Shown here: positions 5,986 through 34,013 of the stretch, piece after piece | Position numbering within the stretch: position 1 is the first letter of the stretch | How the letters are laid out: every line of letters begins with the position of its first letter | Sequence record: OR844650.1 | Length of the DNA stretch: 64,000 bases | Direction: 5' to 3' (one strand) | Position numbers and translations under genes: made by a program | Notes under the pieces: generated by a model | Seen by the model: only the letters and a program-made list of their open reading frames with translations | What the model was told of the DNA's origin: nothing | Databases searched by the model: none

Positions 5986-5995
5986 TGCTACTGAA

Positions 5996-6247: not shown

Positions 6248-6276
6248 TGTAATCCCTCTTCTTAATTCCTCTTTTG

Positions 6277-6313
6277 TATTTACAAAAAAAAGGCTGACCG
6301 AAGTCAACCTTTT
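6277..6313 (-). terminator. cUUCGg terminator followed by TAAATA late-promoter core
   Basis: GGTTGAC-TTCG-GTCAGCC-T8-G-TAAATA. Confidence 0.8.
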
Positions 6314-6319
6314 AAATGT

Positions 6320-7831
6320 TTATTTTTTATCCTTTCCAACACCACTGTCGTACTCTTTGAATGAGTTATCAAGTGTAGTTAGTGCATACTCATATGCTTC
6401 TGGTGATTCAATGTCAACATCATCTGCACCATTTACTAAATCAGCCCACGCCTTTTGAAGTTTACGAGCATTGTTACCAACATTATCTTTAATCCAACTA
6501 ATGTTTTTGTTGATACTTTTACGATCAGCACCTGCTTTTTTGCCAATCTCGGATATCCACATCATTAGCTTTTGAAGTTCATGAATTGATTTATCGGTCA
6601 TTTCAAGATGTTCTTCTTCCATACCTTCGGAATCAGATGAACCAACGTCAATTCCATGTTTAGCTAATAGTTTACCAAGTTCAAAGAATGCAGCTTCAGC
6701 AGGGAAGTCATAACCTTTCTCTTTGTAGTTATTCCATGCACTATCAAACTCGTCAACAAAACGGTTAGCATAATCTGGATTTTTAACTAATGCTTTATAT
6801 ACTGCAATTGCATGTTCAAAACCTTCTTTATCTGACCCAAACTCTTCCATCTCAGGACGATGAATGTATCCATCCATATCAACGGTATCAGGTAGTTCTT
6901 CTTGCTCAGGCTCAACATCTTTCTGTTCAACTGCACCCTCTTCATCTGCACGCTTTAGATAACCATCTGGTGTTACCTTCTCACCATGTTCTGCTTCATA
7001 CTTTTTCATAGTGTTGAATGCAGCATCCATAGCTGTTACGAAGCGACTTTTCTCACCTTGTACATAAGATTTAAGTGCACTGTTAACTGCATCTGATACG
7101 AGCTTAACCTTATCGTCTTTACCTTCTAAACGGTTTTCAAGTTTAGCCAGTACATTCTTGACTTGCTGGGCATTAGCACGGTCCGCTTTACCAATATTAT
7201 CAAAAGTTTTAAGAATACCATCAAGACTTGCTTCACCCTGTTCAGGTTCTTTGGAATCTTCTTTGTGTGTACCTTCAAGTGCACGCATGATAGTACTGAA
7301 TACTTCAGTTGGTTCAGTGCTCTTATTACCTTTCATTACATCAAGTACAGCTTGTGCTTTACCTTTGAGTTCTTCTTTAGGAACTGCCTGTAGTGCTTTG
7401 ACAATACCCTGAATCAACTGTGGTTTGTTAGCAAAGATCTTACCTAAGTTATCTGATAACTCTTTAACAGGGTTAGCAGCTTTAGGTACTTCTGCTTTTG
7501 GTTCTTCTTTAGGAACTGCTTGTTCTTTCTCAGCACGTTCCATATCAGCTAGGCGTTGTTTTTGTGTAGCATTAAGAAGTCCCAATGAATTAACATAACG
7601 TAGCTTTTCTAGCTCAGTCATGTTCTCAGTACTCTTAACTTCACCTGCTTCTGCGTTTGCTTTACCAGCTAGACCAGTTCCTTGGTTACGTGACCCACGT
7701 GAACCTTGACCTGCTTGATAACTATTTGGACGGCGGTTGCGTTCACTCCATTTATCAGAGTGACCAGCCATGTTACCACCATTTTTATCAGTAAAATTAC
7801 TTGGCATTTGATTTCTCTCCATAGATTTCAT
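6320..7831 (-). CDS. 503-aa charged, helical protein; possible virion internal protein
   Basis: Low-complexity Lys/Glu/Ala-rich sequence; TATAAATA upstream. Confidence 0.6.
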   Translation of the reverse strand: MKSMERNQMPSNFTDKNGGNMAGHSDKWSERNRRPNSYQAGQGSRGSRNQGTGLAGKANAEAGEVKSTENMTELEKLRYVNSLGLLNATQKQRLADMERAEKEQAVPKEEPKAEVPKAANPVKELSDNLGKIFANKPQLIQGIVKALQAVPKEELKGKAQAVLDVMKGNKSTEPTEVFSTIMRALEGTHKEDSKEPEQGEASLDGILKTFDNIGKADRANAQQVKNVLAKLENRLEGKDDKVKLVSDAVNSALKSYVQGEKSRFVTAMDAAFNTMKKYEAEHGEKVTPDGYLKRADEEGAVEQKDVEPEQEELPDTVDMDGYIHRPEMEEFGSDKEGFEHAIAVYKALVKNPDYANRFVDEFDSAWNNYKEKGYDFPAEAAFFELGKLLAKHGIDVGSSDSEGMEEEHLEMTDKSIHELQKLMMWISEIGKKAGADRKSINKNISWIKDNVGNNARKLQKAWADLVNGADDVDIESPEAYEYALTTLDNSFKEYDSGVGKDKK

Positions 7832-7848
7832 TTTTTTCTCTATGTCTA

Positions 7849-7892
7849 TATTTATAGTATAAAGAAAAGGCTGACCGAAGTCAACCTTATTT
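7849..7892 (-). promoter_or_regulatory. Composite cUUCGg terminator, sigma70 promoter (TTGACT-17-TATACT) and overlapping late promoter TATAAATA
   Basis: GGTTGAC-TTCG-GTCAGCC-TTTTCTT-TATAC-TATAAATA. Confidence 0.85.
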
Positions 7893-7894
7893 TG

Positions 7895-8008
7895 TTACTT
7901 AGATTGTTCTTGTGCAGGTGGATTTACTTTTTGATCCACTACATAGAATACACCACCAACCAGTACTGCGGCGATGAGTGCAGCAACTACAAATTTTAAA
8001 CCTTGCAT
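7895..8008 (-). CDS. 37-aa single-pass membrane microprotein (not in ORF track)
   Basis: MQGLKFVVAALIAAVLVGGVFYVVDQKVNPPAQEQSK; GAGGT SD; promoter upstream and terminator downstream. Confidence 0.75.
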   Translation of the reverse strand: MQGLKFVVAALIAAVLVGGVFYVVDQKVNPPAQEQSK

Positions 8009-8037
8009 ATATGATACCTCAGTTATATTGAGAAGTT

Positions 8038-8075
8038 ATGATACAACAAAGGGCTGACCTTAGTCAACCCTTTTT
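8038..8075 (-). terminator. Variant composite terminator and promoter (TTGACT-18-TATCAT)
   Basis: GGGTTGAC-TAAG-GTCAGCCC-TTTGTTG-TATCAT. Confidence 0.8.
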
Positions 8076-8076
8076 A

Positions 8077-8460
8077 TTACTTCTTGAACTTATGTTTTTC
8101 ACTTTCGATTGCATTCACGATTTCATCATGAATTTTACGAAGATTGTGAGTTTTCTTGAGAGAATCATGCAATGCACGGAATGCAGAGTGTACAGTTGCT
8201 TTAAAGTGCTCTTTAGGAGTTACTTTAAGTTTCTCGATAATATCACGTACATAGATTGGGTGATCCTCAAACACACGATTAAGCTCATGACCTAGTGATT
8301 CTAGGCTAAATGCTTTTTCACGGGATGGACGATCATGTGCAAGACTTTGGTCTGGTTTTAGAAGACCTAGTGAATCTAGATACTTGTGCTTATGTGCATT
8401 GTCTAGACCAGAAATATCAACATCATGTGATGGATCTTTCTTATTCCATTTATCAACCAT
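8077..8460 (-). CDS. hypothetical late protein
   Basis: KYLDSLGLL matches RYVNSLGLL in 6320..7831; TATAAATA upstream. Confidence 0.7.
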   Translation of the reverse strand: MVDKWNKKDPSHDVDISGLDNAHKHKYLDSLGLLKPDQSLAHDRPSREKAFSLESLGHELNRVFEDHPIYVRDIIEKLKVTPKEHFKATVHSAFRALHDSLKKTHNLRKIHDEIVNAIESEKHKFKK

Positions 8461-8496
8461 TTTTATAACTCCTATAAGAGATAAATTTTACTATAA

Positions 8497-8504
8497 TATT
8501 TATA
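8497..8504 (-). promoter_or_regulatory. T4-type late promoter TATAAATA
   Basis: Exact consensus about 40 nt upstream of the 8460 start. Confidence 0.65.
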
Positions 8505-8575
8505 GTTCCGTTGTCATTTATATCGAATGACATAAAACATTATATCATAATAAGAATGGTTGTCCCAAAGTTAAA

Positions 8576-9019
8576 TTAGTACTGACCAAGTTCAGATGTA
8601 AAAATAAATGCATCCATGTCTTCCAACGTAAGTTTTAAGTCTGGTACATACTTAAGAATAACGCACTCTGGCTTCTTAATAGCAGCTTGATAAGCAGCAA
8701 TGGCAAGGGATTCCAATTGCTGTGCTGTATAATTTTTACGTTCTGCATTAAAAACTTTGTTTTTGATATCACCACCTGGGAGTTTTTCAAACTCACGCAT
8801 AACTGCGGTAAGAACATCGTCAGCAGTGTTACTATATACCCATTGGGGTAATTGCATTACATTATAAATCACACCACTATCATCCATCAAAGAGATCCAT
8901 TTGTACCCATCACTAGCACTGAACAAACGCCCTTTTAGTACTGTGTTATTAGTTAAATTTACAAATGCAAAAATATCTTGTTCGTTAAGTTCAATACTAT
9001 TAACATTTACCCAACTCAT
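8576..9019 (-). CDS. hypothetical protein
   Basis: ORF; likely start MSWV. Confidence 0.7.
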   Translation of the reverse strand: MSWVNVNSIELNEQDIFAFVNLTNNTVLKGRLFSASDGYKWISLMDDSGVIYNVMQLPQWVYSNTADDVLTAVMREFEKLPGGDIKNKVFNAERKNYTAQQLESLAIAAYQAAIKKPECVILKYVPDLKLTLEDMDAFIFTSELGQY

Positions 9020-9032
9020 TACGATTCCCCAT

Positions 9033-9629
9033 TCATAAATCACGAACAATATTCATTAAACACAATTTAGGTTTTATAGCATTCAACACCCATATGCATT
9101 CTTTGTAAGTAGCTATTATATCATCTAAATGCTCAGTTACAATGCTTTCTTGAAAATATTCTTCATCATTGAGCTTTGCTAATTTAGTAACATCACACGT
9201 AGGCACTATAGGTCTGGATTGTACACCCATTCCATTATTGATATTAGTGAAATGTACAAAATGGTACTTCACTACACCTTTATCTAGATTTATTATACAT
9301 GACAAATTTTCCAACTCAGTTAGTTTTTTATTACAAGTAACATTAATGAAACCAGCATTATAGGCTCTATAATCATCTACTGATATCTCAAAATCATTAC
9401 GTTCAAATATAAGTGAAATGAGTTGGTCCAGTGGTTTGACATTCATATATTTTAATGAATTTACGTATGATACTTCAATCTTAGATGAAATTATCTTTTT
9501 ACTAAGTGCAGTTAAATCTTTGTTAGATTTAACTGTTAAAACAATAGGTTTAAACCTAGAACTTTTGTTCTTTTTTGATACTTTAAAACGACCTTTACGA
9601 TTCATAATTTCCTCAATTAATAATTTCAC
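9033..9629 (-). CDS. EExxFQxST-motif family protein
   Basis: NDEEYFQESIVTEH. Confidence 0.75.
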   Translation of the reverse strand: MKLLIEEIMNRKGRFKVSKKNKSSRFKPIVLTVKSNKDLTALSKKIISSKIEVSYVNSLKYMNVKPLDQLISLIFERNDFEISVDDYRAYNAGFINVTCNKKLTELENLSCIINLDKGVVKYHFVHFTNINNGMGVQSRPIVPTCDVTKLAKLNDEEYFQESIVTEHLDDIIATYKECIWVLNAIKPKLCLMNIVRDL

Positions 9630-9834
9630 ATTTAACGTGTGGTTTATATAGCATAATTAACCCATTTTTAAGTACAATGATTGTTGCTCTGTTAGTAATC
9701 GAAACGTTTTTAATTATACTTTTTTTATATGTTTCAACATATTTCTCTTCATAATTTATACATTTAACATATTCTTTTTGTTTAGCACTTACAACAGTAC
9801 TGAATAATATCAGTACAAGTACTATATATTTCAT
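9613..9834 (-). CDS. small exported protein
   Basis: Signal peptide MKYIVLVLILFSTVVSA. Confidence 0.7.
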   Translation of the reverse strand: MKYIVLVLILFSTVVSAKQKEYVKCINYEEKYVETYKKSIIKNVSITNRATIIVLKNGLIMLYKPHVKCEIIN

Positions 9835-9851
9835 TACTATACCTTATAAAC

Positions 9852-9876
9852 AAAAAGGAATTCATTTAAGAATTCC
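9852..9876 (-). terminator. intrinsic terminator
   Basis: GGAATTC..GAATTCC followed by T5 on minus strand. Confidence 0.6.
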
Positions 9877-9886
9877 TATTTTACAA

Positions 9887-10180
9887 TCATTTATCTAACA
9901 TACCATTGTGCAAACGTTCATATACTTCAGTTCGACGCAAATTAACAATATCTTCTGCGTATTTTAATGTAAATGCCCATGCTTTTGGATGTACGTTAAG
10001 CTTCATACGAATTCGATTTTTCATCAACTCTCCACTTAAACGAATAAATTCGTGTACACCACGACTACCGTATTCAGTAATTAAATCATTAATGTACATA
10101 TCACGAAGAGTTTCATCTGCACATTCTTTAACCATTTCTACGTCAGCGACGATGCTTTCATTAACTGAAGTACTGATCAT
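9887..10180 (-). CDS. hypothetical protein
   Basis: 97-aa ORF, AAGGT SD. Confidence 0.7.
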   Translation of the reverse strand: MISTSVNESIVADVEMVKECADETLRDMYINDLITEYGSRGVHEFIRLSGELMKNRIRMKLNVHPKAWAFTLKYAEDIVNLRRTEVYERLHNGMLDK

Positions 10181-10192
10181 TTTTAATTTACC

Positions 10193-10459
10193 TTATTTAA
10201 ATTCGACTGTAATTTTATCACCTTCAACTACGAACTTACAGTTGTAGCGACGTGCCATATCCATGTACATATGCTCAGAGTACCAAGGAACATCAATAAT
10301 CGGATGCTCTGCATATTGTAGAACTTCACGGTCGCCCACTGTAGTAATGATGAAAGGAATGTTCATCTCTCGTAAAAACAGTTCAGCACCAGGAGAACGA
10401 TTAATAAATTCAGTATCATTACGTAAAGTAAATCCATTATATTGTAATTTAAGCTTCAT
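10193..10459 (-). CDS. hypothetical protein
   Basis: 88-aa ORF, GAGGA SD. Confidence 0.7.
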   Translation of the reverse strand: MKLKLQYNGFTLRNDTEFINRSPGAELFLREMNIPFIITTVGDREVLQYAEHPIIDVPWYSEHMYMDMARRYNCKFVVEGDKITVEFK

Positions 10460-10473
10460 ATGTTATCCTCTAT

Positions 10474-10818
10474 TCAATACCATTCTTTAAAACCATTAAG
10501 TTCGGCTACGTGAGTGATTATAACACATATAACATTCAGGTCAAGTATAATTTGATCATAATTTAATTTTATACGATCATCATTATATGCTCTAAAAACT
10601 ACATCGTAATCAAAGAAATTTGCGTTTTCATCATTCATTGAAACGATTCGGTATCTACGTCTTCCATCTGTATTGAATATAGTTAAACACTGTTGAAACT
10701 TTCTCATTAACTGTTTAGATAGGATATTATAATATTCAATATCTTTTTGTGAATTACGTGGGTCATCAGGAAGATAGAATGAAACAAATTTCTTTAATTC
10801 TATTTGAGTTTTATCCAT
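10474..10818 (-). CDS. hypothetical protein
   Basis: 114-aa ORF. Confidence 0.7.
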   Translation of the reverse strand: MDKTQIELKKFVSFYLPDDPRNSQKDIEYYNILSKQLMRKFQQCLTIFNTDGRRRYRIVSMNDENANFFDYDVVFRAYNDDRIKLNYDQIILDLNVICVIITHVAELNGFKEWY

Positions 10819-11251
10819 ATATTACCTCATGTGTTTCTCTTTTACTTTGTCGGAACTCATCCTTTGCTTCCTTAACTGACATGATACGAACTAATTTAGC
10901 ACTACCGCAATAGTACTGAACCTGATTACGACCAATGTCTACATGGTGGTCTGGAACTTCATATACAGATATAGCAAACCCAGCACGATGCAATTTACCC
11001 AAGTCCATAGTGAAGAATCTGAACAAATCTTTCAAACTTTGACAGCCAAATACCCATCCACTTTTGATTGAATAGATCCCATCCTCAGTTGGTTCAGGTT
11101 GGAATTGAGAAGGTGTAGTCATAAGCAAACGGTCAAATCCATTTTTAGTACTGTATCTGGTTGAATACCGTGCAAACGGACCTACAGTTCGTGCAGGATC
11201 TAAGTTAGGTTCAATGTAACTAAATTTAAGTTCAAAACGATATACATACAT
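10811..11251 (-). CDS. hypothetical protein, possible ADP-ribosyltransferase-like fold
   Basis: N-terminal VYRFE, then GPF, PEPTEDG and VFGCQSL; fold call is speculative. Confidence 0.4.
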   Translation of the reverse strand: MYVYRFELKFSYIEPNLDPARTVGPFARYSTRYSTKNGFDRLLMTTPSQFQPEPTEDGIYSIKSGWVFGCQSLKDLFRFFTMDLGKLHRAGFAISVYEVPDHHVDIGRNQVQYYCGSAKLVRIMSVKEAKDEFRQSKRETHEVIYG

Positions 11252-11279
11252 AATTAAAATCCTCTAATTTATTAAGAGA

Positions 11280-11314
11280 ATTATAACAAAAAAGGCTGAC
11301 CGAAGTCAACCTTT
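11280..11314 (-). terminator. Composite cUUCGg terminator and promoter (TTGACT-18-TATAAT); -35 overlaps TGA stop
   Basis: AAAGGT-TGA-CTTCGGTCAGCC-TTTTTT-GT-TATAAT. Confidence 0.85.
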
Positions 11315-11497
11315 GTTTTGAAGTTCTTGAACTAATTGTCGTACTTCGTTAATATTTTTACACTGCTTTACAGTGAAGTAATCATACTTACGACCATAGG
11401 TTCTTGGGTCATCACCTTCCATATACTGCTGCACATCAAAGATTTGTAAGTAGGGATGCTGCATAACACGAATATTATCACTTTGATAAATCAACAT
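11306..11497 (-). CDS. hypothetical protein
   Basis: Likely start MLIYQS after AAGGA SD. Confidence 0.65.
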   Translation of the reverse strand: MLIYQSDNIRVMQHPYLQIFDVQQYMEGDDPRTYGRKYDYFTVKQCKNINEVRQLVQELQNKG

Positions 11498-11501
11498 AAT
11501 A

Positions 11502-11852
11502 TCAATCCTTATATTTACACAAGCCACCAAAACTAGTTTCTTTAGCACCACGACGCATCATAACTAATTTAGCATATTGTGTGCCATTACTATCTTCATA
11601 TACATCTACTTCAATAAACGCTAAGAAGTTAGGGTCTGTGTCGTTAGAAAACTCAGTGAAGCTAATGTCGCCTACTGTATGCTCTTTAACAAACGTATAT
11701 GATTGTCCATCAATATATACAATATCTCGATCGTCACTATCACCTTGATAGATATGTTTAATATTACCATCTGTACAAACTAAACCTTCCAATGGTTCAG
11801 CATATGACAATCCACACATTAACATACATACAAAAAATAAAATAATTTTCAT
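11502..11852 (-). CDS. exported protein, paralog-like to 12244..12603
   Basis: Signal peptide; LVC...IVYIDGQSYTF. Confidence 0.7.
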   Translation of the reverse strand: MKIILFFVCMLMCGLSYAEPLEGLVCTDGNIKHIYQGDSDDRDIVYIDGQSYTFVKEHTVGDISFTEFSNDTDPNFLAFIEVDVYEDSNGTQYAKLVMMRRGAKETSFGGLCKYKD

Positions 11853-11854
11853 GA

Positions 11855-12232
11855 TTATTTTCCTCCAACGTTAAGTGATTTCTTGTACTGATATTCTTTA
11901 TAAGTACTATACCATATATCACCAACGTAAATCAAGTACCACGTAGCAGGATAAAGAGCCAATCCAGTACTGATGTATACGAACTTTTGGTCAAGGACAT
12001 CAAATACATACAGAAGGAAAGTTACTCCCATAATGCAAGAACAAATTAACCACAAGTTATAAGCAATCGAATCGCAAGCAAAAATAGAATCAAGCTTAGA
12101 AATTAGGACATATTTGTTTGTTAAAATGAAATGAATTACTGCAACTAAACAATATCCTGCCATAAAAATAGAAATTAAAAAAGACAGAATAATTGGAATA
12201 TTCAACAACAAAAGTAAAATAGTGTTTACCAT
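11855..12232 (-). CDS. membrane protein
   Basis: 3-4 hydrophobic segments. Confidence 0.7.
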   Translation of the reverse strand: MVNTILLLLLNIPIILSFLISIFMAGYCLVAVIHFILTNKYVLISKLDSIFACDSIAYNLWLICSCIMGVTFLLYVFDVLDQKFVYISTGLALYPATWYLIYVGDIWYSTYKEYQYKKSLNVGGK

Positions 12233-12243
12233 TTTTTTAAGTC

Positions 12244-12603
12244 CTATATTTCACAGTGTAAGTTCAATTTATCTATATCTAGGTCACGGCGTACCGATGA
12301 GTCCAAGTAAATTACTATATAGATATCACCATTACCAGTTCTTGGGTCTACAATTAATATTACGTTTGCTAATGTACCAGAATCATCTCTATAAGTCGAG
12401 ATTTTTTTATTACCGATAATACTTTCTACTTTAAAACGATAAATCACACCATCAACAACTATATTTTTACCATTTCTAGGGTCGTTAGTCAATACATGCC
12501 ACGTTCCCTTAGTACTACGACAATATGTTTCTGCTGCTGCACAATAACTAAAACATGAAAATAATGCACACACAAGTGCTATTAATTTTATATAACTCTT
12601 CAT
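12244..12603 (-). CDS. exported protein, paralog-like to 11502..11852
   Basis: Signal peptide; TYC...IVVDGVIYRF. Confidence 0.7.
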   Translation of the reverse strand: MKSYIKLIALVCALFSCFSYCAAAETYCRSTKGTWHVLTNDPRNGKNIVVDGVIYRFKVESIIGNKKISTYRDDSGTLANVILIVDPRTGNGDIYIVIYLDSSVRRDLDIDKLNLHCEI

Positions 12604-12620
12604 AACAAACCTCTAACGAG

Positions 12621-12657
12621 AAATACTTCTGTACTATATATATGTACAGAAGTATTT
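12621..12657. repeat. 14-bp perfect inverted repeat with 9-nt AT loop
   Basis: AAATACTTCTGTAC-tatatatat-GTACAGAAGTATTT, intergenic. Confidence 0.75.
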
Positions 12658-12681
12658 AATACTATAGAGATATTTTCACTG

Positions 12682-13008
12682 TTACATCTTATTCGTGAAC
12701 TTGAATTTGATAATATCAATCCAAATTTTAACATTTCCTGCAAATAGTGCTTTGATTAGCCACATAATTGCAACAAAGTTCTCAACTAAATCCAAAGTTT
12801 TAACTACTGCACCGAGTGGGAAGATAAAACTCAAAACCCATACAATTACTGAAACCACAACGACTGCATAGAAAATACGCACAATCGGTGAATCAAGCAT
12901 AAACAACTCAGAGAACTCTTTTTTATCATTATCATCAGTAATGAAGCATTCGTAAACCAGAAGCCAAATCAGAATTAAAGACGGAATTGAAATTAGTACT
13001 GATAGCAT
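12682..13008 (-). CDS. membrane protein
   Basis: 3 hydrophobic segments. Confidence 0.7.
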   Translation of the reverse strand: MLSVLISIPSLILIWLLVYECFITDDNDKKEFSELFMLDSPIVRIFYAVVVVSVIVWVLSFIFPLGAVVKTLDLVENFVAIMWLIKALFAGNVKIWIDIIKFKFTNKM

Positions 13009-13054
13009 ATTTTTTACCTCAAGTTTAAGTGTTAAGTTTCAGACTACAGGAACC

Positions 13055-13082
13055 ATTATACAGTACTACTAATGGTTGTCAA
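13055..13082 (-). promoter_or_regulatory. sigma70-type promoter TTGACA-16-TATAAT with AGTACTG abutting -10
   Basis: TTGACA accattagtagtactg TATAAT. Confidence 0.75.
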
Positions 13083-13308
13083 CTGGTTTTTCTTCAATAA
13101 GCATAAGATAACTGATTACGAAGAGTAATACCGACACAATATCAATAACAGTAAAGCTCACGGGAATGATAATAGAAACCAGTACTAATGCCACGTTTAG
13201 CAAGAATACAGTAGTGATATCTACAATCGGTCGTTTAGTGGCTAATGCTACTAGTGTAGGATAAAACATAAACAATAGTGCAACAACAAAACTTAGTACT
13301 AGATACAT
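13069..13308 (-). CDS. small membrane protein
   Basis: Hydrophobic 79-aa ORF. Confidence 0.7.
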   Translation of the reverse strand: MYLVLSFVVALLFMFYPTLVALATKRPIVDITTVFLLNVALVLVSIIIPVSFTVIDIVSVLLFVISYLMLIEEKPVDNH

Positions 13309-13961
13309 TTCTTTTTCACCTTAATAAAATTATAACACAAAACCACATCAACATCTGGCTCATCATACAAGTACTCAAAACGTTCTTTACTTCGTTTAGT
13401 ACCGATATACTCACCATTCTTATGCCAACGCCATCCACCATCCTTTGGTTGTTCAGACTTCAGTACTGGGTGATAGCACAGGACAATTTCTTCTGGACCT
13501 TCAATTAGGTTCTTGTACTTATTCATAATCTGTTCAAGCGTATCTGCTACACCATAAGATGGATGCATAAGATAAGACTCAGGACGTGGACGTCCACTTG
13601 GTAGAATATCATCAGTACTATTAAAGATAGCACGGAAGTCTTCAGATGTGTATAGACTTCCATCTTCATGGATCATTGGGTATTCATCCACGACATCGTA
13701 ATCAGTGAAGTGTTCAATTGCATGTGCAGGTCGATAACCTGCAAGGATACCTGCATGTTTAGTCTGGACAATAGTCATAACAGATGTATTGTTGTTTACA
13801 TTTGGATCATGAATTTCAGCCCAAAACGGATGATTTGGATCAAAAGTTGCATTTACCAATGTACACTCACCAATGTAGTCAAACATAGTTTCCTTGAAGT
13901 TTAAAGAAACTCCACGTAATGCCCAGTCAGGTGAAGTGATGAAATTAAGATTAACTAACAT
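13299..13961 (-). CDS. conserved phage hypothetical protein (GGWRWHKxGxYIG family)
   Basis: PVLKSEQPKDGGWRWHKNGEYIG...EYLYDEP, a motif recurrent in phage proteins. Confidence 0.7.
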   Translation of the reverse strand: MLVNLNFITSPDWALRGVSLNFKETMFDYIGECTLVNATFDPNHPFWAEIHDPNVNNNTSVMTIVQTKHAGILAGYRPAHAIEHFTDYDVVDEYPMIHEDGSLYTSEDFRAIFNSTDDILPSGRPRPESYLMHPSYGVADTLEQIMNKYKNLIEGPEEIVLCYHPVLKSEQPKDGGWRWHKNGEYIGTKRSKERFEYLYDEPDVDVVLCYNFIKVKKKCI

Positions 13962-13993
13962 AAGTATCCTCAGATGCAATTTTTTTGATGTGG

Positions 13994-14645
13994 TTATTGT
14001 ATCAAAGATGTATCGATTTGTACAACATTTATTGTAACTATTTCGTACATATAGTCAGGTGCATTGAACTCAGCATACCACTCAATGATCTCACAAGCAG
14101 CATCAACTTGGTTGTTCGCATTAACACGTCTTGCATAGGTACTAGACATTTTATATCTACCATTTACATACACGTTATATACACCATGACACCACCACAT
14201 CTTAGTCATTTATACTAGGCCATACTTTATATTGTAAGTTCTGGTATTGAAATTTACCAATTTCATTTTTCTTACGGAATGATTCATCTACTTGAATTTC
14301 CGCATCGTACTGACCATCAGCCTGTACAACGTACTTAAATTCTTCTACGTGTGAAAAACGTTGACCTTCACCTTCTGGTTTATAGACTTGTACTAAACCT
14401 TCAACTAGATATAAATTCATTTATCATTCCTCATCACTTTCAGTTAGTATAATGCTATGTACAGTTTCCACATAGCGGTGTGTTTTGGGTGTGTTATACT
14501 TTGTAATTTCATCAAACAATTTAAACAGTGCATCCACTTCACTAAGAGCACGAATGAATACATCCATCTTTGTGACAACTCTGGAATAACCTCGTATGTT
14601 ATTAAATTCAGAGACGTGTTCATACACAACATAGTATCTATTCAT
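13994..14645 (-). other. Three small hypothetical CDS (13994..14209, 14202..14420, 14424..14645)
   Basis: Abutting 71-73 aa ORFs; two begin MNxYxV. Confidence 0.65.
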
Positions 14646-15160
14646 ATATTAAAAAGTTCCATGAATTCATTGAATAAAGAAGTTCTAATGCACATAACAA
14701 ATTCAAAATCAACATCTATGGTGTCAAGTAGTTTGAACAACTTTGGTACTAATGGATCATTCACCTCAAAGTTATGAATCAAACTTTGTTGAAACACATT
14801 TTCTTCAGTACTATAATCAATAACAAAATATTCAGCAATACCAGGTGGTGTGTAAACATCATATAAAATATGGCGGTGATGATTTGTTTTAGAACTAGGG
14901 GAATATATAAGTTCTATTTCATAAGATTTATCAGCACTGCGTGCGTAACAAACAATATCAGTACTCGTTATTTCTGAACCATCACTTCTCTCTGAAAAAC
15001 AAACATCAGCATAGCGTTTTCCAGAGAGATTCAAAAGGTCATGAGTTGTTTTACCATAACAGAAATCAGTTTCAATGCGTATCACATCTTGATATTCAAT
15101 TGGTCTTGTATCGCGGCGTTCACGATTAAACACTAATTTCAACAACTCATTAATATCCAT
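14642..15160 (-). CDS. EExxFQxST-motif family protein
   Basis: STEENVFQQSLIHNF. Confidence 0.75.
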   Translation of the reverse strand: MDINELLKLVFNRERRDTRPIEYQDVIRIETDFCYGKTTHDLLNLSGKRYADVCFSERSDGSEITSTDIVCYARSADKSYEIELIYSPSSKTNHHRHILYDVYTPPGIAEYFVIDYSTEENVFQQSLIHNFEVNDPLVPKLFKLLDTIDVDFEFVMCIRTSLFNEFMELFNI

Positions 15161-15729
15161 TATTTCGCCTCGATAACCTTAAGGTTAACAAAATCACCTT
15201 TTACTTTCATGCATTTGAATTCAGTGCGAGTTTCATCCCCACTATCGCGAGGCCAATGAGTGGCAGAGTAGCACTGGTCTGGTGTTTTATATACACCTTC
15301 ACCAATAGTACGAGTGATTTCACCATTGGTGAGAACTACTGCGAGATATAAAGTAAACATGATATTCGCCTTAGAATAATTTATTAATAATAATAGCACC
15401 CAACGCAAGAACTGCAATAATTACAGATACCCACATTACTGCATTCACTGTACCAGTAAGTTCTTTATCAAACTCCCTGCACTTCTTGCGGTAATCTTCC
15501 CACTCTTTGTTATTCACACTGCCACTCCTAATAGGTCTGTAGCTTTCTTGAGTACTACGTCAATGGTTTCCAGTACTGCACCTTTGTGTTCAATTGATAC
15601 AATATTATTATAAGTATCAAGGTCCAAGTACTCCATATATTCAGTTTTGAATACACGAACATCAGTACTAGTGATTTTAATATCACAACCTTTATCCCAA
15701 ATAACCTGCATCATTTCATTGGTAGTCAT
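15160..15729 (-). other. Small hypothetical CDS (15160..15417, 15514..15729)
   Basis: ORFs in operon context. Confidence 0.55.
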
Positions 15730-16004
15730 TATTCAACCTTATCATAAACAAGTTTGTGTGTGCTTAGTACTTTGTTGTGATGTCCAGGGCATTCATATAC
15801 ATACAATCGCTCCTGTCGTTTTTCCCAACCACCACAGATACGACCTGATTGTGTACATACCTCATACTCGTTAATAAAAGACTTACCTGTGAATGTACAA
15901 TCCTGACGAACTAAGTCTTTTGCACTAAACCTGCCGTCATCATTACATGCTGTAAGAAACATTGTACAGAATACAAAGACAACTGTCAATAGTTTTTTAA
16001 TCAT
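15729..16004 (-). CDS. lipoprotein
   Basis: Lipobox FLTA-C after hydrophobic signal. Confidence 0.7.
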   Translation of the reverse strand: MIKKLLTVVFVFCTMFLTACNDDGRFSAKDLVRQDCTFTGKSFINEYEVCTQSGRICGGWEKRQERLYVYECPGHHNKVLSTHKLVYDKVE

Positions 16005-16369
16005 TGAACATCACCCCAACGGAAGCCATTCATATAATTCAAATTCACCTCAACGAGTTCATGTGTTTTTGTACACCAAATTGATAGAGTTTTTGTAACA
16101 TCACCAGGTGAACTTTCATACTTCACACAATACCCTTCAATGCGAAGAGTTTTGTTAGTCCAATGTTGCCACTCAATCCAAATTTCATTAGGATAATAAA
16201 CCATATCTTCCTTGAACCTATGGTATTGATCCATCGGTAAGTGACCTTCAACTTCAATTACTTCAGCACTTCGAACAAGTTTGTCAAGCTTGTACTTTAT
16301 CTCAGCAAGATATTCTTCATCATTCAGACGAGTTAATAAATCTGCTGCACGTGTTGTATCAAGGCTCAT
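16001..16369 (-). CDS. hypothetical protein
   Basis: 122-aa ORF, ATGA overlaps. Confidence 0.7.
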   Translation of the reverse strand: MSLDTTRAADLLTRLNDEEYLAEIKYKLDKLVRSAEVIEVEGHLPMDQYHRFKEDMVYYPNEIWIEWQHWTNKTLRIEGYCVKYESSPGDVTKTLSIWCTKTHELVEVNLNYMNGFRWGDVQ

Positions 16370-16617
16370 TGTTGTACTCCATTAATCACTGATGTATGCA
16401 TACGAATTTTCCCACTCGTATGTGACGAAGAAGTGTTTGCATTAGGACAGTACACAGTGTACAAAGTCGCACCAGCACCATCTTGTTGCATACGATAAAT
16501 CTTACACCCTGCTTCTTTTAATTCAGCAGGTAGAACAAAATCACTTGTACGTTCTTTGGTAGAAGCATCACATGCAGTGAGTAGAAATGCGACGAGTACT
16601 GCTACAATGTATTTCAT
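16366..16617 (-). CDS. lipoprotein
   Basis: Lipobox LLTA-C. Confidence 0.75.
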   Translation of the reverse strand: MKYIVAVLVAFLLTACDASTKERTSDFVLPAELKEAGCKIYRMQQDGAGATLYTVYCPNANTSSSHTSGKIRMHTSVINGVQQ

Positions 16618-16925
16618 TAACGAACCTCCACTTCTTGAGAAAGAGCATGAGTCAGTGCATTTGAGTTCGAACCATTCATTTCACGCTGACATACAAACAT
16701 AATGGCATCTTGTACTGAACCTGCGATTTCATACTCACGACCTTCTGGATCAGTTACCAGATGTTCAACGATACAACCACCCCTCAGTACAGAAGCACCA
16801 GTACTTACACTAATTCTGTAACCTAAGAAATCAAACTGCATACATGCGTCAGTAGGTTTCATCCAATAACCGCTGTTTTGATTCAAATCGATGATTACAA
16901 AACCTTGAGTGTTAGTTTGAAACAT
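16617..16925 (-). CDS. hypothetical protein
   Basis: 102-aa ORF, AAGGA SD. Confidence 0.7.
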   Translation of the reverse strand: MFQTNTQGFVIIDLNQNSGYWMKPTDACMQFDFLGYRISVSTGASVLRGGCIVEHLVTDPEGREYEIAGSVQDAIMFVCQREMNGSNSNALTHALSQEVEVR

Positions 16926-17018
16926 AGTTAATTCCTTAATTAATTTAAAAGGGTGGAAACGCAGTGACGAGTACGATTATGCTGTCTTTCCTTTCACTGC
17001 ATTCCCTTTGATATAAAC

Positions 17019-17047
17019 ATTATACTGCTATTATTCAGTTCTGTCAA
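17019..17047 (-). promoter_or_regulatory. sigma70-type promoter TTGACA-17-TATAAT
   Basis: Perfect consensus, followed by GTTTATATCAAA shared with the 17368 promoter. Confidence 0.85.
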
Positions 17048-17322
17048 TCGATATAAGTACCTTTTTTAACATCACAGACTTCTTCCATCCAATGTGGATT
17101 TTCGTTTTTATCAGTGAAGATTTGTTCTGCTTCTTCTTTTGTTTCAGCTAGGACAATACGATCCCCTTCATCCAAATCACGGATACGATACACTTTCAGT
17201 TCTTGTTTCTTCTCAAGAATATTACACAGTTCACGTGCTTTTTCTTCATCGCACTTCCCTTCATTAGCATAAAACCAAATTGCTTTTTTAATAAGGTCAC
17301 GTTCTTCTTTAGAAAAAGACAT
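17044..17322 (-). CDS. hypothetical protein
   Basis: Likely start MSFSKEE. Confidence 0.65.
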   Translation of the reverse strand: MSFSKEERDLIKKAIWFYANEGKCDEEKARELCNILEKKQELKVYRIRDLDEGDRIVLAETKEEAEQIFTDKNENPHWMEEVCDVKKGTYID

Positions 17323-17367
17323 AATATTTCCTATCATTTGTTAAAGTGGATTTCGTTTGATATAAAC

Positions 17368-17395
17368 ATTATACAGTACTGATATCTTATGTCAA
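17368..17395 (-). promoter_or_regulatory. sigma70-type promoter TTGACA-16-TATAAT with CAGTACTG abutting -10
   Basis: TTGACA taagatatcagtactg TATAAT. Confidence 0.8.
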
Positions 17396-17491
17396 GTATT
17401 AATCACCAAAAATCATCAGATACCCAAACCAACCCACACAGACGACTAAGCTAACAATACCAAAGACAATCTCTAAAGTCATGTTGTATCC

Positions 17492-18172
17492 TTAATCAAT
17501 GATTTTATATTCACGATGACCATAGAATCCAGCCTCAAGGATGCGATTACCATCAGCATCTTCCAAATCCCACCCACGGGATGTTTCGGCAATAATAGTC
17601 ATGATGTGACCTCTTGGGAAAATGCCACTCAGAGTGGATACATCCTCAAGTAATTGAACTTTCTTTCCAACATTGGAATTCGGTTTAAACATTTTATGGC
17701 CCTTATTCATTGATCACATCAAGTACTTTATCCAGCTTTTTACCAATGCTTTCCTTTGGTTTCTCACCATTCTGGAATACATTAGAACTGCAATAGTCAG
17801 GACGTGTATTAGGAAACTTCTCCTGCATCCAACTATGACCATACACACCCAGCATAATACCAACAATAAGAATGATAATTTGCATGATAAACCTCTTAAT
17901 TAATGTTTTATTTTAGAACTCAATATAGAAAGTATACTCTAGTACTTCTTATATGTCAACTATTATTCTTTCTCACCAACAAACAGTTTAACTTTTGTAT
18001 TACTGTTATAACACCACATCTGTTCTTTGTTAATAGACATCCAGATATTTTTATTGACCTGTTCGTAGGTACTATCACGAACAGAAATACATTGATTCAT
18101 GGAATTCATTGGAGTGATTTGTACACCGCTTTGCATGGAAAGAGCTACTACTAAAAAGATTACTGAATTCAT
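17492..18172 (-). other. Three small CDS (17492..17710, 17703..17885, 17963..18172); the last two have N-terminal hydrophobic segments
   Basis: ORFs with SD sequences. Confidence 0.6.
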
Positions 18173-18236
18173 TGGATATTCCTTAATGGTTAATCATCCA
18201 TCTCTTCGAGATGTCTGTTCGCTTCTAATACTACGT

Positions 18237-18265
18237 ATTCTACGCGAATGATTAATAACTGTCAA
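18237..18265 (-). promoter_or_regulatory. sigma70-type promoter TTGACA-17-TAGAAT
   Basis: Near-consensus, immediately downstream of the structured RNA. Confidence 0.75.
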
Positions 18266-18269
18266 GGAC

Positions 18270-18753
18270 TTTTAATATTGACGGGATTTGAGGAAGGGAT
18301 TTTTCTTCCCCCCACAAGGAGGGAAATTTGACGCTGATGGTATCAGAGCTATTGCATTGAAGATTACTCATAACGAGTGCGAAAGCGGGTCATCCTGTTT
18401 CTCTCTACTTCAGTTTCATATGACGGTCTACACTTTTAAACATAGTGTATCTTCATTAAGTATCTATGCAATCAAATACTTAATGTGAGTACTCAAATTC
18501 TGGACGCAACTTTCCTGTACAAAATTTGATAACTCTCCCTTAGATAATTCGTAAGGTGTTATCCTTATATGTCTATCAAGGAACCACCAGCTATCCTAAC
18601 GTGGTTCTTTATACAGCCGCATTGCCGTGAGGGGTTCAAACTATGCCCACATCTAACGGGTTTCTTTTGCTGTTCGCACTGTCGGACTGCTCAACTGCCC
18701 TCTACGTTTTCGAGTGGTTCAGGTACATGAATATCATGCCAACAGAATTGTAC
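18270..18753 (-). ncRNA. candidate large structured non-coding RNA (~480 nt), family unknown
   Basis: No minus-strand ORF; higher GC than flanks; extended -10 TGaTATAAT at 18760-18768; at least six stems, e.g. 18454-18463/18476-18485, 18528-18542/18552-18563, 18581-18587/18601-18607. Confidence 0.6.
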
Positions 18754-18789
18754 AAGATAATTATATCACAAACTTTTACTTCATCCCAT

Positions 18790-18820
18790 AAAAAAAGGTT
18801 GGCTTATGCCAACCTTTTTT
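18790..18820. terminator. bidirectional intrinsic terminator after the sigma factor gene
   Basis: A7-GGTTGGC-ttat-GCCAACC-T6. Confidence 0.85.
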
Positions 18821-18822
18821 CT

Positions 18823-19788
18823 TTAGAAATCTTCGTATTCGTACCCTTTTGCAAGTACTAGCTTCTTAAGCTTTTGCATAGCTTCACTGTACTTTCGGTG
18901 TATTGATGAACGGGATTTAACATATTTTCCATTATCATCAACAAAACCATTATCAGCAATCTCACGAAGCGTTTCAGGTTCATATTCACCTAGACCATGA
19001 ACACGATGGATAATCTCACGTTCTTTAGTACTCAATTCGTTAGTCAGTTCATTGATAGCATAACGTAAAGGTGCACGAATACTATCAACATTGAGGTTAA
19101 AATCAGAAGCAGGTGAATGAATAATGTCACCTAGTGTACCATCGGTAACACCGTCTAATGGTGCATCCAGAGAAGTGTATTCGCTTTGAAATAACAAACA
19201 GTTATTAACATGCTGAATCTCAATCCCAGTACCCTCTGAGATTATTTCAGGAGTTGGGCGAACACCATGTTTACGCATATATTCCTGGCAGAATCTTTTT
19301 ACTTTGATCTTATGAACACTCATATAACGTGGGAAGTGTACCATATAGTTAGCGTCAGAACTTTCGTTATAAACTGTCATGTAAATACTAGAAGAAGCAT
19401 AGGTAATGAACTTAACATTCTTATTAAGATCAAAGGTTTTTAGTGCTCTCATGAACCCCTCAACACCATATGAAATCTTATCTTCAAATGGGATATAACA
19501 AGTACATTTACTTGCTACATCAATAATAAGTCCATAATTGTAACGAACTAACAGTTCAGTGTTTTTCTTTACATTGATACCAGCTTGAATATCACGAATT
19601 AGATCTTCATTGGAAACATTTGGTGGTCGCTTAAGTGTAATATTATATTTGAAACTGCTTTGTACTTTACCTTCATTTTCATCTTTATCTTCAACGAAAT
19701 CTAAGGCTTCTAGTGTGTTGACTTCTTCATTAGCAAAACATTCATCCAGAACTTCTTCGGCAATTGTATTTAAATCAAGCTTTTTCAC
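18823..19788 (-). CDS. RNA polymerase sigma factor, sigma70 family (RpoD/RpoS-like regions 2-4)
   Basis: Region 2 LVRYNYGLII..EDKISYGVEGFMRALKTFD..KFITYA; region 3 RPTPEIIS..TSLDAPL; region 4 LSTKEREII..ETLREIA..SRSSIHRKYSEAMQKL. Confidence 0.9.
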   Translation of the reverse strand: MKKLDLNTIAEEVLDECFANEEVNTLEALDFVEDKDENEGKVQSSFKYNITLKRPPNVSNEDLIRDIQAGINVKKNTELLVRYNYGLIIDVASKCTCYIPFEDKISYGVEGFMRALKTFDLNKNVKFITYASSSIYMTVYNESSDANYMVHFPRYMSVHKIKVKRFCQEYMRKHGVRPTPEIISEGTGIEIQHVNNCLLFQSEYTSLDAPLDGVTDGTLGDIIHSPASDFNLNVDSIRAPLRYAINELTNELSTKEREIIHRVHGLGEYEPETLREIADNGFVDDNGKYVKSRSSIHRKYSEAMQKLKKLVLAKGYEYEDF

Positions 19789-19809
19789 TTACATCTCCTA
19801 ATGACGAAA

Positions 19810-20307
19810 TCAAAATCGATATACATTAATATTATCATCTGTGAAGCAATCATGGTTATGCACATCCATGAAAGTACTAAACACTTTATCATATAAAGTT
19901 GTATGTTCTTCATGAATAGCAGCATCTAGCATGTATTCTCCACCACTACCCATAAAGAAAGTGTAGTCTTCATGTAGATATTCAAGTTTTTTAATAAACT
20001 TTCCTTTAGTTAAAATCATATGAATAACATAATCTTTAGAAAGAAGCACACAATGGCAACTTAACTTTCTGTCAGGTATAACTGGTACTTTATTAATTAA
20101 CCAATCCAGTACTTTATCAATTTCACTTACTGACCCACTAGCACTGAATAAACGGTCATGTACATATAAAGTTTTTTGATTAACAACTCCATATTGATAT
20201 TTTGGTCTTAGTGGGAAAAAACCAAATAAGTTTCGTGGTATAGTTGACGTAACTCTAGAATCGGTAATCAATAAATTTAATCGTTTATCAATATAAACAG
20301 TTGTCAT
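19810..20307 (-). CDS. Ntn-hydrolase, HslV/proteasome-beta-like peptidase
   Basis: N-terminal (M)TT, DSRVT and MGSGGEY motifs. Confidence 0.6.
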   Translation of the reverse strand: MTTVYIDKRLNLLITDSRVTSTIPRNLFGFFPLRPKYQYGVVNQKTLYVHDRLFSASGSVSEIDKVLDWLINKVPVIPDRKLSCHCVLLSKDYVIHMILTKGKFIKKLEYLHEDYTFFMGSGGEYMLDAAIHEEHTTLYDKVFSTFMDVHNHDCFTDDNINVYRF

Positions 20308-24468: not shown

Positions 24469-24584
24469 AAAAACACCTCATTATTCATTCACTACATGAT
24501 AACACCAAATCATACACCAGTCAAGCTCATTTTTTGGATATGCATAATAAATACGTTATAATAATTATACCAATGGAGGGATAA

Positions 24585-25739
24585 ATGTCAAGGTCAATTG
24601 CTGCGGCTGGACGCTATAAGTTTGGTGAATGTGGTTATGTTGTTGATGGTGCAATCCTCAATGATGGAACTAGACTAAAAAATATTAGAATCTATCGCCA
24701 AAGAAGCCATAGATTATATGATTTAGTTGATCCAAGAACTAATATAATATATCGTAAAGTACAAATAACAACTAAAGATAATAAAGGTTATCTATTAAAT
24801 TACAATAAAACTAATGACCAACTATTAAGTGAAATTAATAAAAATTGTTTCTTTGTTCGTGGATATTCTGAAGAGCCACAAGAAACTGATACTGGATTTG
24901 TATATAAATTCATGCTACATAAAACAATTTTAGGTAGTTCACAAACCTTGTATCATATGTATACACCTGAATGTGGTATTATAGATCGTGATATAGATAA
25001 TATTCTCATTTCACCAGTATTTGTTGGTAATGACTCAATTAGTGGTAAATTATTCAACACTGGTTCAGAAATTGATACTAACGGTATGGTAATAACAATC
25101 GTATTACCAGACGGGACAGAATACTTTACTACCCAATTTGTTAATGATGCATTTACAATTCCAGTTGATGTTATCACACAATCAGGGAAAGGTACTGCTA
25201 CGCTCACTTCTCCATATTATAACACTAAAGTGGTGGAATTTGATGTTCTTGAAAGTGGTGAGGATATTGATTTTGTTACATCAGTTCTTCTATCCCAATT
25301 TGAACCTGTTTCGGAAGGTGTATTTTCTGCGGTTGTTCCATTTGATGTTCATGATCGTGGACAGTACTTAGCACTTCAAGCATACAGTGGTGACTTATAT
25401 CAAGTTGGTGTAGATCTTTCTGTAGACGCAGAAGGTAATATTACTGTGTATCAAACTGATAATTTACCTGTTTCTTTGAGTATAATCGGAAAAACACTGC
25501 ATACTACTCCTTTCCATAAAGAATATACTTTAAGTGAGTGGGTTCTCGGTGAAGACTCTATGTACTCTATCTCAGTTCCAGTAACTGAACATGGTAAAGC
25601 ACTACCACAAGTTCAATTATATTCTTCAGACAATCATGTAGTTCATAGTGAAATACAAGTGGATGAAGATGATAATGTAATTCTTAAAGTAGTAGAACCG
25701 CTTGACTGCTCAGTCGTAATAGTTGGTTACAACGCATAA
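24585..25739 (+). CDS. 384-aa beta-rich protein, possibly structural; the only convincing plus-strand gene
   Basis: GGAGGG SD; ATAAATA upstream; two C-terminal repeats (VVPFDVHDRG..VDAEGNITV and VPVTEHGKA..VDEDDNVIL). Confidence 0.7.
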   Translation: MSRSIAAAGRYKFGECGYVVDGAILNDGTRLKNIRIYRQRSHRLYDLVDPRTNIIYRKVQITTKDNKGYLLNYNKTNDQLLSEINKNCFFVRGYSEEPQETDTGFVYKFMLHKTILGSSQTLYHMYTPECGIIDRDIDNILISPVFVGNDSISGKLFNTGSEIDTNGMVITIVLPDGTEYFTTQFVNDAFTIPVDVITQSGKGTATLTSPYYNTKVVEFDVLESGEDIDFVTSVLLSQFEPVSEGVFSAVVPFDVHDRGQYLALQAYSGDLYQVGVDLSVDAEGNITVYQTDNLPVSLSIIGKTLHTTPFHKEYTLSEWVLGEDSMYSISVPVTEHGKALPQVQLYSSDNHVVHSEIQVDEDDNVILKVVEPLDCSVVIVGYNA

Positions 25740-25740
25740 T

Positions 25741-25766
25741 AAAAAAAGCCACTACATTGTAGTGGC
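25741..25766 (-). terminator. intrinsic terminator between convergent genes
   Basis: GCCACTAC-att-GTAGTGGC with T-tract on minus strand. Confidence 0.8.
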
Positions 25767-25781
25767 ATTAATTTTATCTAA

Positions 25782-33003: not shown

Positions 33004-33413
<410 letters not shown>

Positions 33414-33421
33414 CTTTTTTT

Positions 33422-33583
<162 letters not shown>

Positions 33584-33587
<4 letters not shown>

Positions 33588-33748: not shown

Positions 33749-33909
<161 letters not shown>

Positions 33910-33932
33910 GGTTTTTAACCTTTAATTAAAAT

Positions 33933-34009: not shown

Positions 34010-34013
34010 TATT

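Follow-up and report, generated by a model that had tools for sequence, protein, structure and literature searches.

A large pseudoknotted RNA gene in a jumbo phage

The 64,000-nucleotide (nt) stretch of sequence record OR844650.1 analysed here, which we call the window, belongs to the 352-kilobase (kb) genome of Escherichia phage ECO103 4-12-1, an Asteriusvirus jumbo phage (Rak2-like). We show that positions 18277-18753 of its minus strand are a stand-alone gene, with its own promoter, for a large, ornate and pseudoknotted non-coding RNA (ncRNA). This copy (c1) spans about 476 nt from its predicted start to a conserved 3' motif, with full-length nhmmer matches in all homologs, and the size of the gene ranges from 450 to 650 nt across copies. 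An earlier note, made from the letters of the window, had proposed a new phage ncRNA in this place, a proposal that is now strongly supported by base covariation, strand-specific G.U pairs, the dedicated promoter and the lack of a match in Rfam. The feature is real and had been correctly spotted, and the family to which it belongs is much wider, and its support stronger, than one window could reveal.

Covariation and fold

The single-sequence fold of the window copy gave a z-score of only -1.83, with 4 of 100 shuffled sequences folding as well, so the window alone did not prove the existence of a structure. Comparison of 32 representative copies (median pairwise identity of 66%), in contrast, supports some 80 base pairs in at least 14 helices with three pseudoknots, and in 58 of these pairs both partners have changed. 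Helices were found by a scan for stacked covarying column pairs, with shuffles and slid partners as controls. The 5' half of the RNA (alignment A2) comprises 34 pairs, 26 of them compensatory, with 96.5% of the alignment cells paired and a covariation of 0.581 (shuffles, 0.163; slid partners, 0.10 or less). The 3' half (alignment A1) comprises 46 pairs, 32 with two-sided changes, and 97.2% of its cells are paired (79.8% when shuffled); its covariation is 0.537, whereas shuffles reach 0.211 and slid partners no more than 0.112. Moreover, the helices read on the window minus strand contain 168 G.U cells versus 6 A.C cells, which excludes both the plus strand and a purely DNA-level palindrome and indicates an RNA on the gene strand. 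Six of the seven stems listed beforehand from the window turned out to be conserved helices, whereas the one at 18528-18542/18552-18563 is not kept in other copies. Two-sided compensatory changes occur in the stems 18581-18587/18601-18607, 18454-18463/18476-18485, 18429-18434/18444-18449, 18389-18393/18420-18424 and 18366-18378, and the stem of the 3' GC hairpin varies only by one-sided changes from G-C to G-U.

The 5' domain (18529-18756, minus strand, A2) has a leader hairpin, which is variable, and a long-range helix. It further contains a hairpin whose loop reads GAAAAYGUA, helices nested around the invariant CACGGCAAUGCGGC, two more hairpins (one at 18581-18607 and a small one) and the invariant UAAGGGAG. 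The 3' domain (18276-18498, minus strand, A1) contains a hairpin of 12 base pairs and a pseudoknotted core built around two invariant blocks, GACCGU and ACCCGCUU, together with a variable hairpin, a GC hairpin and a tail. The conserved GC hairpin (18303-18327, minus strand; helix 8, 98.7% paired) has the form UUCCCUCC-UUGU-GGGGGGAA and includes a run of six G residues (G6). The variable hairpins are insertions at fixed points of the molecule, a trait shared with other large structured RNAs.

A close-up view of the tertiary pairings shows that in pseudoknot 1 a hairpin loop AUUGCAU (18466-18472, minus strand) pairs with AUGCAAU (18351-18357, minus strand), which lies directly 3' of helix 18358-18362/18408-18412 and about 115 nt downstream of its partner in the window. 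Its seven pairs are formed in 99.5% of the cells, five of the seven positions covary and at least 10 compensatory versions are found across clades. Pseudoknot 2, of the H-type and placed in the invariant core (18381-18424, minus strand), joins GUCAU (18424-18420) with AUGAC (18393-18389) and crosses both GAGAG (18405-18401)/CUUUC (18385-18381) and UGAAG (18412-18408)/CUUCA (18362-18358); helices 4, 5 and 6 of this region are paired in 100% of the cells and contain 3, 4 and 2 covarying pairs, respectively. In pseudoknot 3 (18542-18597, minus strand), the loop GGAUAG (18597-18592) of hairpin 18581-18607 pairs with UUAUCU (18547-18542), a 3' strand located just 5' of the invariant UAAGGGAG. This interaction shows 8 compensatory versions, and its mean best helix reached 4.20 with the own partner versus 3.61 +/- 0.13 with swapped ones (maximum of 4.07 in 200 shuffles).

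For this family, provisionally named Rak2-like phage ornate RNA, the core of the signature reads GACCGU...UAR..AGA..AC.G....ACCCGCUU. The whole signature (invariant blocks, pseudoknot 1 and a TGRAAC-N14-TGnTATAAT promoter) is present in the window copy, and the family pattern matches 43 of the 45 copies of the working set, retrieving nothing other than homologs from genome and metagenome collections.

Promoter, terminator and 3' flank

The promoter of the RNA gene (18760-18788, minus strand) is made of a -35-like TGGGAT (18788-18783), a TG (18768-18767) and a TATAAT box (18765-18760), for a predicted RNA start at about position 18753. The extended -10 already noticed at 18760-18768 is indeed there (TGATATAAT, 18768-18760, minus strand), and the promoter is kept at the same place in homologs: every full-length copy with enough upstream sequence, bacterial ones included, carries TG(G/A)AAC(A/G)-N14-TGn-TATAAT 35-80 nt before the core. 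In a genome census based on a variable-spacing search, strict sites of this class (TGRRAY-N13-16-TGNTATAAT) numbered 17 in 352 kb, all of them on the gene strand, including one directly upstream of the transfer RNA (tRNA) cluster (window 34114-34142, minus strand) and others at window 8539 and 62329. Judged by its sequence, the promoter matches the 'divergent RpoD-like' class described for phages CBB and GAP32 (PMC5259590).

At the other end, about 60% of the copies, the window copy not among them, show a hairpin followed by six U residues, which forms a terminator about 75 nt before conservation ends. Beyond this optional terminator lie the conserved GC hairpin with its G6 run, the motif CAAAUCYCGUCAR, an AU-rich spacer (78.5% AT versus a background of 66.6%) and either one or two hairpins that carry GAACGNAGUGA as their loop. 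In the window, the conserved 3' motif CAAAUCCCGUCAA, followed by the AU-rich spacer, occupies 18278-18290 (minus strand), its CGUCA core being invariant and its flanking positions nearly so (A1). The GC hairpin motif and the 3' motif are confined to the four RNA copies in the whole 352 kb genome.

The GAACGNAGUGA-loop hairpins (one or two, with an 11-nt loop) are found 60-170 nt beyond CGUCAR in phage and island copies alike, and from its sequence the loop could form tandem sheared G.A pairs closing a GNA triloop. This loop motif is not enriched elsewhere in the window, where a degenerate version of the downstream hairpin module (18217-18250, minus strand; UUCGC...AAUAC-GUA-GUAUU...GCGAA) overlaps the promoter of the next gene. 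A different element, a hairpin and then a U-run between promoter and core, characterises the c4-type copies and is conserved across genera; it is seen at about 1990-2060 of extracted locus L007 (same genome) as well as in loci L029, L030, L032, L036 and L041, and could act in attenuation or protect the 5' end.

Copies in jumbo phages

The genome of the phage holds four paralogous RNA copies in a single orientation, at about 18.5, 128.5, 208.3 and 261.7 kb of 352 kb. A BLAST search of phage genomes found homologs in 61 records at 245 places, about 4 per genome; in all, 62 Rak2-like jumbo phage records have 3-5 copies each, and the sequence of the gap that contains c1 is 99% identical to those of PBECO4 and 121Q (Asteriusvirus, Rak2-like, ~350 kb). 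Homologs were searched with nhmmer profiles, a pattern scan of metagenomes gave at least 80 loci, and pattern scans followed by nhmmer recovered 41 full-length copies from IMG/VR, on contigs that match in size the phages 121Q, BF (Serratia), GAP32 (Cronobacter), CBB (Pectobacterium) and fHe-Yen9-04 (Yersinia), and on metagenomic jumbo contigs. No homolog was found among 72,556 plasmids.

In a tree of the copies, those of Cronobacter, Serratia, Yersinia and Erwinia-type phages group by position across genera, which implies that each paralog has been long maintained. The paralogs are syntenic across genera and the genes downstream form a distinct orthologous group at each position, so that a common downstream gene family, considered as a candidate, was rejected. 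The four Asteriusvirus copies group together in the tree, though their positions are syntenic with distinct clades elsewhere, a pattern that suggests concerted evolution or gene conversion among the copies within the genome.

The earlier note had also speculated about a partnership with the sigma factor encoded next to c1. Comparison with the sigma protein and a Pfam scan dismissed this linkage for the other three copies of the genome, whose neighbours are a homing-endonuclease-like open reading frame (ORF) plus a baseplate gene, a DUF7325 protein, and hypothetical proteins, respectively. Island copies likewise have unrelated neighbours (see below) and the fold is not a 6S-like bubble, so the link with the sigma factor is coincidental. 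More generally, no conserved protein partner was found beside the copies in phages or islands. Copies of the c2 type have only a convergent baseplate-like gene downstream in 7 of 8 loci examined, across genera. In the present genome, c2 is followed by a convergent T4-baseplate-like gene and preceded by an ORF (genome ~128.96-129.93 kb; locus 15961-16932) with matches to DUF723, a treble-clef zinc finger and DUF2726, which by these matches looks like a free-standing homing endonuclease.

Copies in bacterial chromosomal islands

The RNA is not restricted to phages. One pattern scan of species-representative bacterial genomes revealed eight full-length copies, seven of them in Enterobacterales, with hosts such as Serratia fonticola, Silvania and Enterobacter chinensis. 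The eighth, also full-length and of the island type, sits in a 2.8 kb contig (DPOH01000171.1) labelled as a Clostridium sp. metagenome-assembled genome, which is probably a binning error because the copy is similar to those of Enterobacterales islands. Among complete E. coli genomes, 2 of 5,426 carry one copy, unannotated in both cases.

Bacterial copies are single and occur within small integrative islands. The one of E. chinensis (JARDVI010000005.1; extracted locus 5909-16183) spans about 10.5 kb between hofB/hofC and nadC, and encodes a large serine recombinase, the RNA, a CI-like repressor, a cro-like gene, two genes of unknown function and a small resolvase, together with a defence module of DarT, an ADP-ribosylglycohydrolase and a UvrD-like helicase. 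The island of E. coli LR-29-1 (NZ_AP027515.1; extracted locus 9958-20302), of about 10.7 kb, adjoins ffs and includes IS3, a truncated tyrosine recombinase, DUF4326, DUF488 and dual-OB genes and a small serine recombinase; its full-length RNA copy shares 79% identity with a Serratia jumbo-phage-type copy and lies in an unannotated gap of 1.4 kb (extracted locus 13892-14554). In S. fonticola, a serine recombinase gene comes first, followed by two ParB-like genes, the RNA and rof. No sigma gene was seen among the called or annotated neighbours in islands, where a serine recombinase and a CI-like repressor adjoin the RNA.

Island copies keep the phage promoter type and the pseudoknots. The main island clade is nearest to copies on a 349-kb jumbo contig, and the resemblance of island copies to different phage copies implies repeated exchange between islands and jumbo phages.

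Comparison with known RNAs

Large ornate RNAs of bacteria and phages are rare, and those known include OLE, GOLLD, ROOL, HEARO and raiA. None of the RNA families of Rfam 15 matched the copies that were scanned, either at the gathering threshold over the whole window, at E<=10 on 17900-19000 or at E<=0.1 on 10 other loci, and these scans turned up only tRNAs and terminator-like noise. In agreement with the hallmarks judged absent from the start, ARAGORN detected nothing like a transfer-messenger RNA (tmRNA) or tRNA in 17900-19000, and neither RNase P RNA nor group I/II introns or known ribozymes were matched by their Rfam models. No RNA gene is annotated under the matches in the listed records, whose features are absent or read 'hypothetical protein', 'terminator' or 'repeat_region', and no mention was found in the genome papers of CBB, UE-S1 and Sharanji, the viral structured-RNA survey of Fremin (2023) or language-model preprints of 2026. 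The family is thus apparently undescribed, within the limits of the libraries searched.

ROOL, often found near tRNA islands, resembles the present RNA in its size, ornateness, association with phages and absence of a conserved protein neighbour. The present RNA differs in giving no match to the ROOL model (RF03087), in its occurrence in Enterobacterales phages and islands with four to five copies per phage genome, each with its own promoter, and in its distance of ~12-16 kb from the tRNA cluster (31-34 kb), to which it is not adjacent although both share the promoter class. ROOL (about 500-600 nt, highly pseudoknotted, of unknown function) and GOLLD are large pseudoknotted phage or prophage RNAs without known protein partners that form RNA-only cages, their function being still open (PMC12286853). 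For GOLLD, whose expression rises during lysis, covarying 'pseudoknots' proved to be intermolecular bridges of the cage (PMC12286853); it is likewise an ornate phage or prophage RNA, and pseudoknots 1-3 could similarly be intra- or intermolecular. The present RNA, of ~480-650 nt, nevertheless has no Rfam match to GOLLD (RF01998, >800 nt), a different fold and no embedded or adjacent tRNAs.

The nearest published parallel comes from PA5oct, a Pseudomonas jumbo phage of the wider Rak2-related clade. Its ncRNA001-004, defined by RNA sequencing (RNA-seq), are ORF-free transcripts of 236-619 nt, two of them very abundant, and were tabulated as four separate loci of different lengths and not as a family (PMC7318152). 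In our comparison, which covered ncRNA002 and ncRNA004, no homology to the present RNA was detected (nhmmer E >= 0.2, with no invariant block inside).

Possible functions and alternatives

Our preferred interpretation, to which we give somewhat better than even chances, is that the RNA is a stable, abundant, trans-acting molecule whose fold would be the functional entity, as a scaffold, a decoy or a self-assembling particle. It would accumulate in such a form during infection, and its abundance is expected because of the high gene dosage and the promoter class. The conserved three-dimensional fold, with the invariant unpaired blocks UAAGGGAG, CACGGCAAUGCGGC, GACCGU and ACCCGCUU, would provide a scaffold or RNA particle to which a conserved macromolecule of the host or phage binds, or that self-assembles in the manner of ROOL and GOLLD, and its action would not go through the neighbouring sigma factor. 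Island copies may in turn exploit or interfere with the same activity upon infection by a jumbo phage. Several points weigh against this interpretation. The functional role is deduced from sequence and expression is a prediction; the window copy lacks the intrinsic terminator, present in only about 60% of copies, that would define its 3' end; conservation past the terminator is not explained by an RNA that ends there, which leaves room for functions in cis or at the DNA level; and the two RNA-seq-defined ncRNAs of the related PA5oct that were compared are not homologous.

A more speculative idea, which we regard as possible but not probable, is that of a categorically new class of functional RNA mediating an interplay between giant phages and islands, for instance through an RNA-only assembly or ribozyme that islands have copied to sense, hijack or poison the phage. 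Such an interplay is compatible with the data since island and phage copies are interleaved in similarity, the island promoter is of the phage type and one island carries DarTG as cargo. If true, jumbo phages would need the RNA in high dose, and islands that carry defence systems or resemble satellites would copy it.

Structured transcripts also serve in replication, as exemplified by RNA II of ColE1, a ~500-nt structured transcript that is controlled by the antisense RNA I and starts from a dedicated promoter some 0.5 kb upstream of the initiation site, and by phage T4, whose several origins are dispersed and rely on middle promoters together with an unwinding element. A structured replication origin was the alternative offered in the earlier note, and we consider it less likely. 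A primer RNA in the style of RNA II or of the R-loops at T4 oriF/oriG, whose persistent 3' hybrid primes the leading strand, would imply four to five origins per jumbo phage and one per island, and seems to us rather improbable. It would fit with the dispersed copies in one orientation (~18, 128, 208 and 262 kb of 352 kb), with a promoter (18760-18788) followed by a structured RNA of RNA II-like size (~476 nt), with the G6 run in a hairpin, with conserved sequence past the optional terminator and a 78.5% AT stretch that could unwind, and with the occurrence in small mobile islands, which must replicate once excised; moreover, in CBB the promoter class is enriched before DNA-synthesis genes (PMC5259590). 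The tertiary structure is however much richer than in the ColE1 and T4 cases, since the three pseudoknots, with their strict Watson-Crick covariation, and the many unpaired bases that never vary go beyond what priming is known to need, and in many copies a strong intrinsic terminator precedes the putative hybrid region by about 75 nt. Absence from the whole plasmid collection, where RNA II has its place, is unexpected for a host-driven origin. No antisense gene of the RNA I type was seen, nor any other replication signal, no conserved antisense promoter was noticed in a search that was not exhaustive, and GC skew shows no switch at the RNA copies, which is uninformative on origins because the skew follows gene orientation and transcription.

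An unlikely alternative is a cis-acting leader, in which the nascent RNA would modify the polymerase, as in HK022 put-like antitermination, or control downstream genes, with the optional terminator as the regulated element. At most positions a promoter, the structured RNA, a terminator-like hairpin and then co-directional genes 30-160 nt further on do succeed each other, and c4-type copies have their hairpin and U-run between promoter and core. The c2-type copies, conserved across genera, face just a convergent gene, so the RNA is kept where nothing co-directional is left to regulate; in the islands, the RNA and the CI-like repressor gene likewise run towards each other. Moreover, the genes downstream bear no relation from one position to another, the gene after the window copy has a strong sigma70 promoter to itself, and 450-650 nt are far above the size of known antitermination RNAs. 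Slightly less likely still would be a ribozyme, self-processing or acting on another substrate, with the invariant unpaired nucleotides around the pseudoknotted core as its putative active site. Size, pseudoknotted core and absolutely conserved unpaired blocks are features of the kind that prompted ribozyme proposals for other large ornate RNAs such as OLE (PMC11332333), but no ribozyme family of Rfam 15 is matched, there is no candidate substrate, and ROOL and GOLLD share these hallmarks yet proved to be architectural assemblies (PMC12286853).

The two remaining explanations are very improbable. 6S RNA folds into one long helix whose central bubble imitates an open promoter, and a 6S-like regulator pairing functionally with the adjacent phage sigma factor, or with the sigma70 holoenzyme, is hardly to be expected. 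As a non-coding RNA, the present one could in principle be linked to sigma or RNA polymerase, it adjoins a sigma gene in this one copy, and its promoter class may depend on a phage-modified polymerase, as can be surmised from CBB and GAP32 (PMC5259590). Against this, the adjacency is conserved neither in the other three copies of the genome nor among the annotated or called genes of the islands, there is no Rfam match to 6S RNA (RF00013), and the size is different, with a multi-domain fold of three pseudoknots in place of the long helix with its open-promoter-like bubble. The slightest chance of all is given to a selfish repeat, a mobile DNA element or an unrecognised coding sequence. The RNA gene has several copies in the genome and also occurs in mobile islands, and some records annotate short coding sequences (CDS) or a 'repeat_region' over it; but the copies are syntenic across genera and old, given their median identity, and neither target-site duplications nor terminal inverted repeats were noticed in the flanks read, with no dedicated repeat search. 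Indels of 1-2 nt in conserved blocks, the G.U bias and the compensatory changes are incompatible with coding.

The function of ornate phage RNAs such as ROOL and GOLLD is still unknown even after their cage structures were solved, and the present family provides handles that those two lack, namely four to five copies per genome and a presence in small islands, one of them with a DarTG defence system. Moreover, host phages such as Sharanji and vB_Eco_slurp01 plate on E. coli K-12, which makes genetics, RNA-seq, pull-downs and cryo-electron microscopy straightforward. The annotation of dozens of jumbo-phage genomes is also corrected, since the locus has been left blank or filled with 'hypothetical proteins' that are very probably spurious: several GenBank records show three to four such CDS across the RNA gene (18173-18822 and equivalents), and that of UE-S1 a 'repeat_region'.

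Genomic setting of the window copy

The RNA gene lies in a gap of 650 nt (18173-18822) between the sigma ORF (18823-19788, minus strand) and the ORF 17963-18172 (minus strand), and all genes flanking the gap are on the minus strand. This had been taken for the largest ORF-free gap of the window. On the gene strand it is the second-largest stretch without an ORF of at least 60 amino acids, only the tRNA region 33354-34162 being larger, so that no other non-tRNA gap exceeds it; nor is it free of ORFs in the strict sense, as mechanical ORFs of 39-72 amino acids occur inside, mostly on the opposite strand. Two other stretches of ~480-570 nt (24469-24952 and 25208-25781) are devoid of minus-strand ORFs of at least 60 amino acids, and Rfam at the gathering threshold gave nothing in either. 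The reported GC enrichment of the RNA region also holds, as a modest rise (0.34-0.45 versus about 0.28-0.37 in the flanks).

Upstream, the gene 18823-19788 encodes a phage sigma-70 family factor with the Pfam domains Sigma70_r2, r3 and r4, and is of interest here as context only. It ends in a bidirectional intrinsic terminator (18790-18822), with an A-run, a GGTTGGC/GCCAACC hairpin and a T-run, which is apparent both by direct reading and as an inverted self-match, and which separates the sigma transcript from the RNA gene. The bounding terminator placed at 18790-18820 by the first inspection can thus be read directly as a hairpin plus T-run (~18791-18822). Rfam gives only weak matches of the terminator type there, and a simple terminator scanner did not flag the hairpin. 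Downstream, the promoter assigned to the next gene (ORF 17963-18172) was confirmed as a sigma70-type TTGACA-17-TAGAAT at 18237-18265 (minus strand), with 11 of 12 matches.

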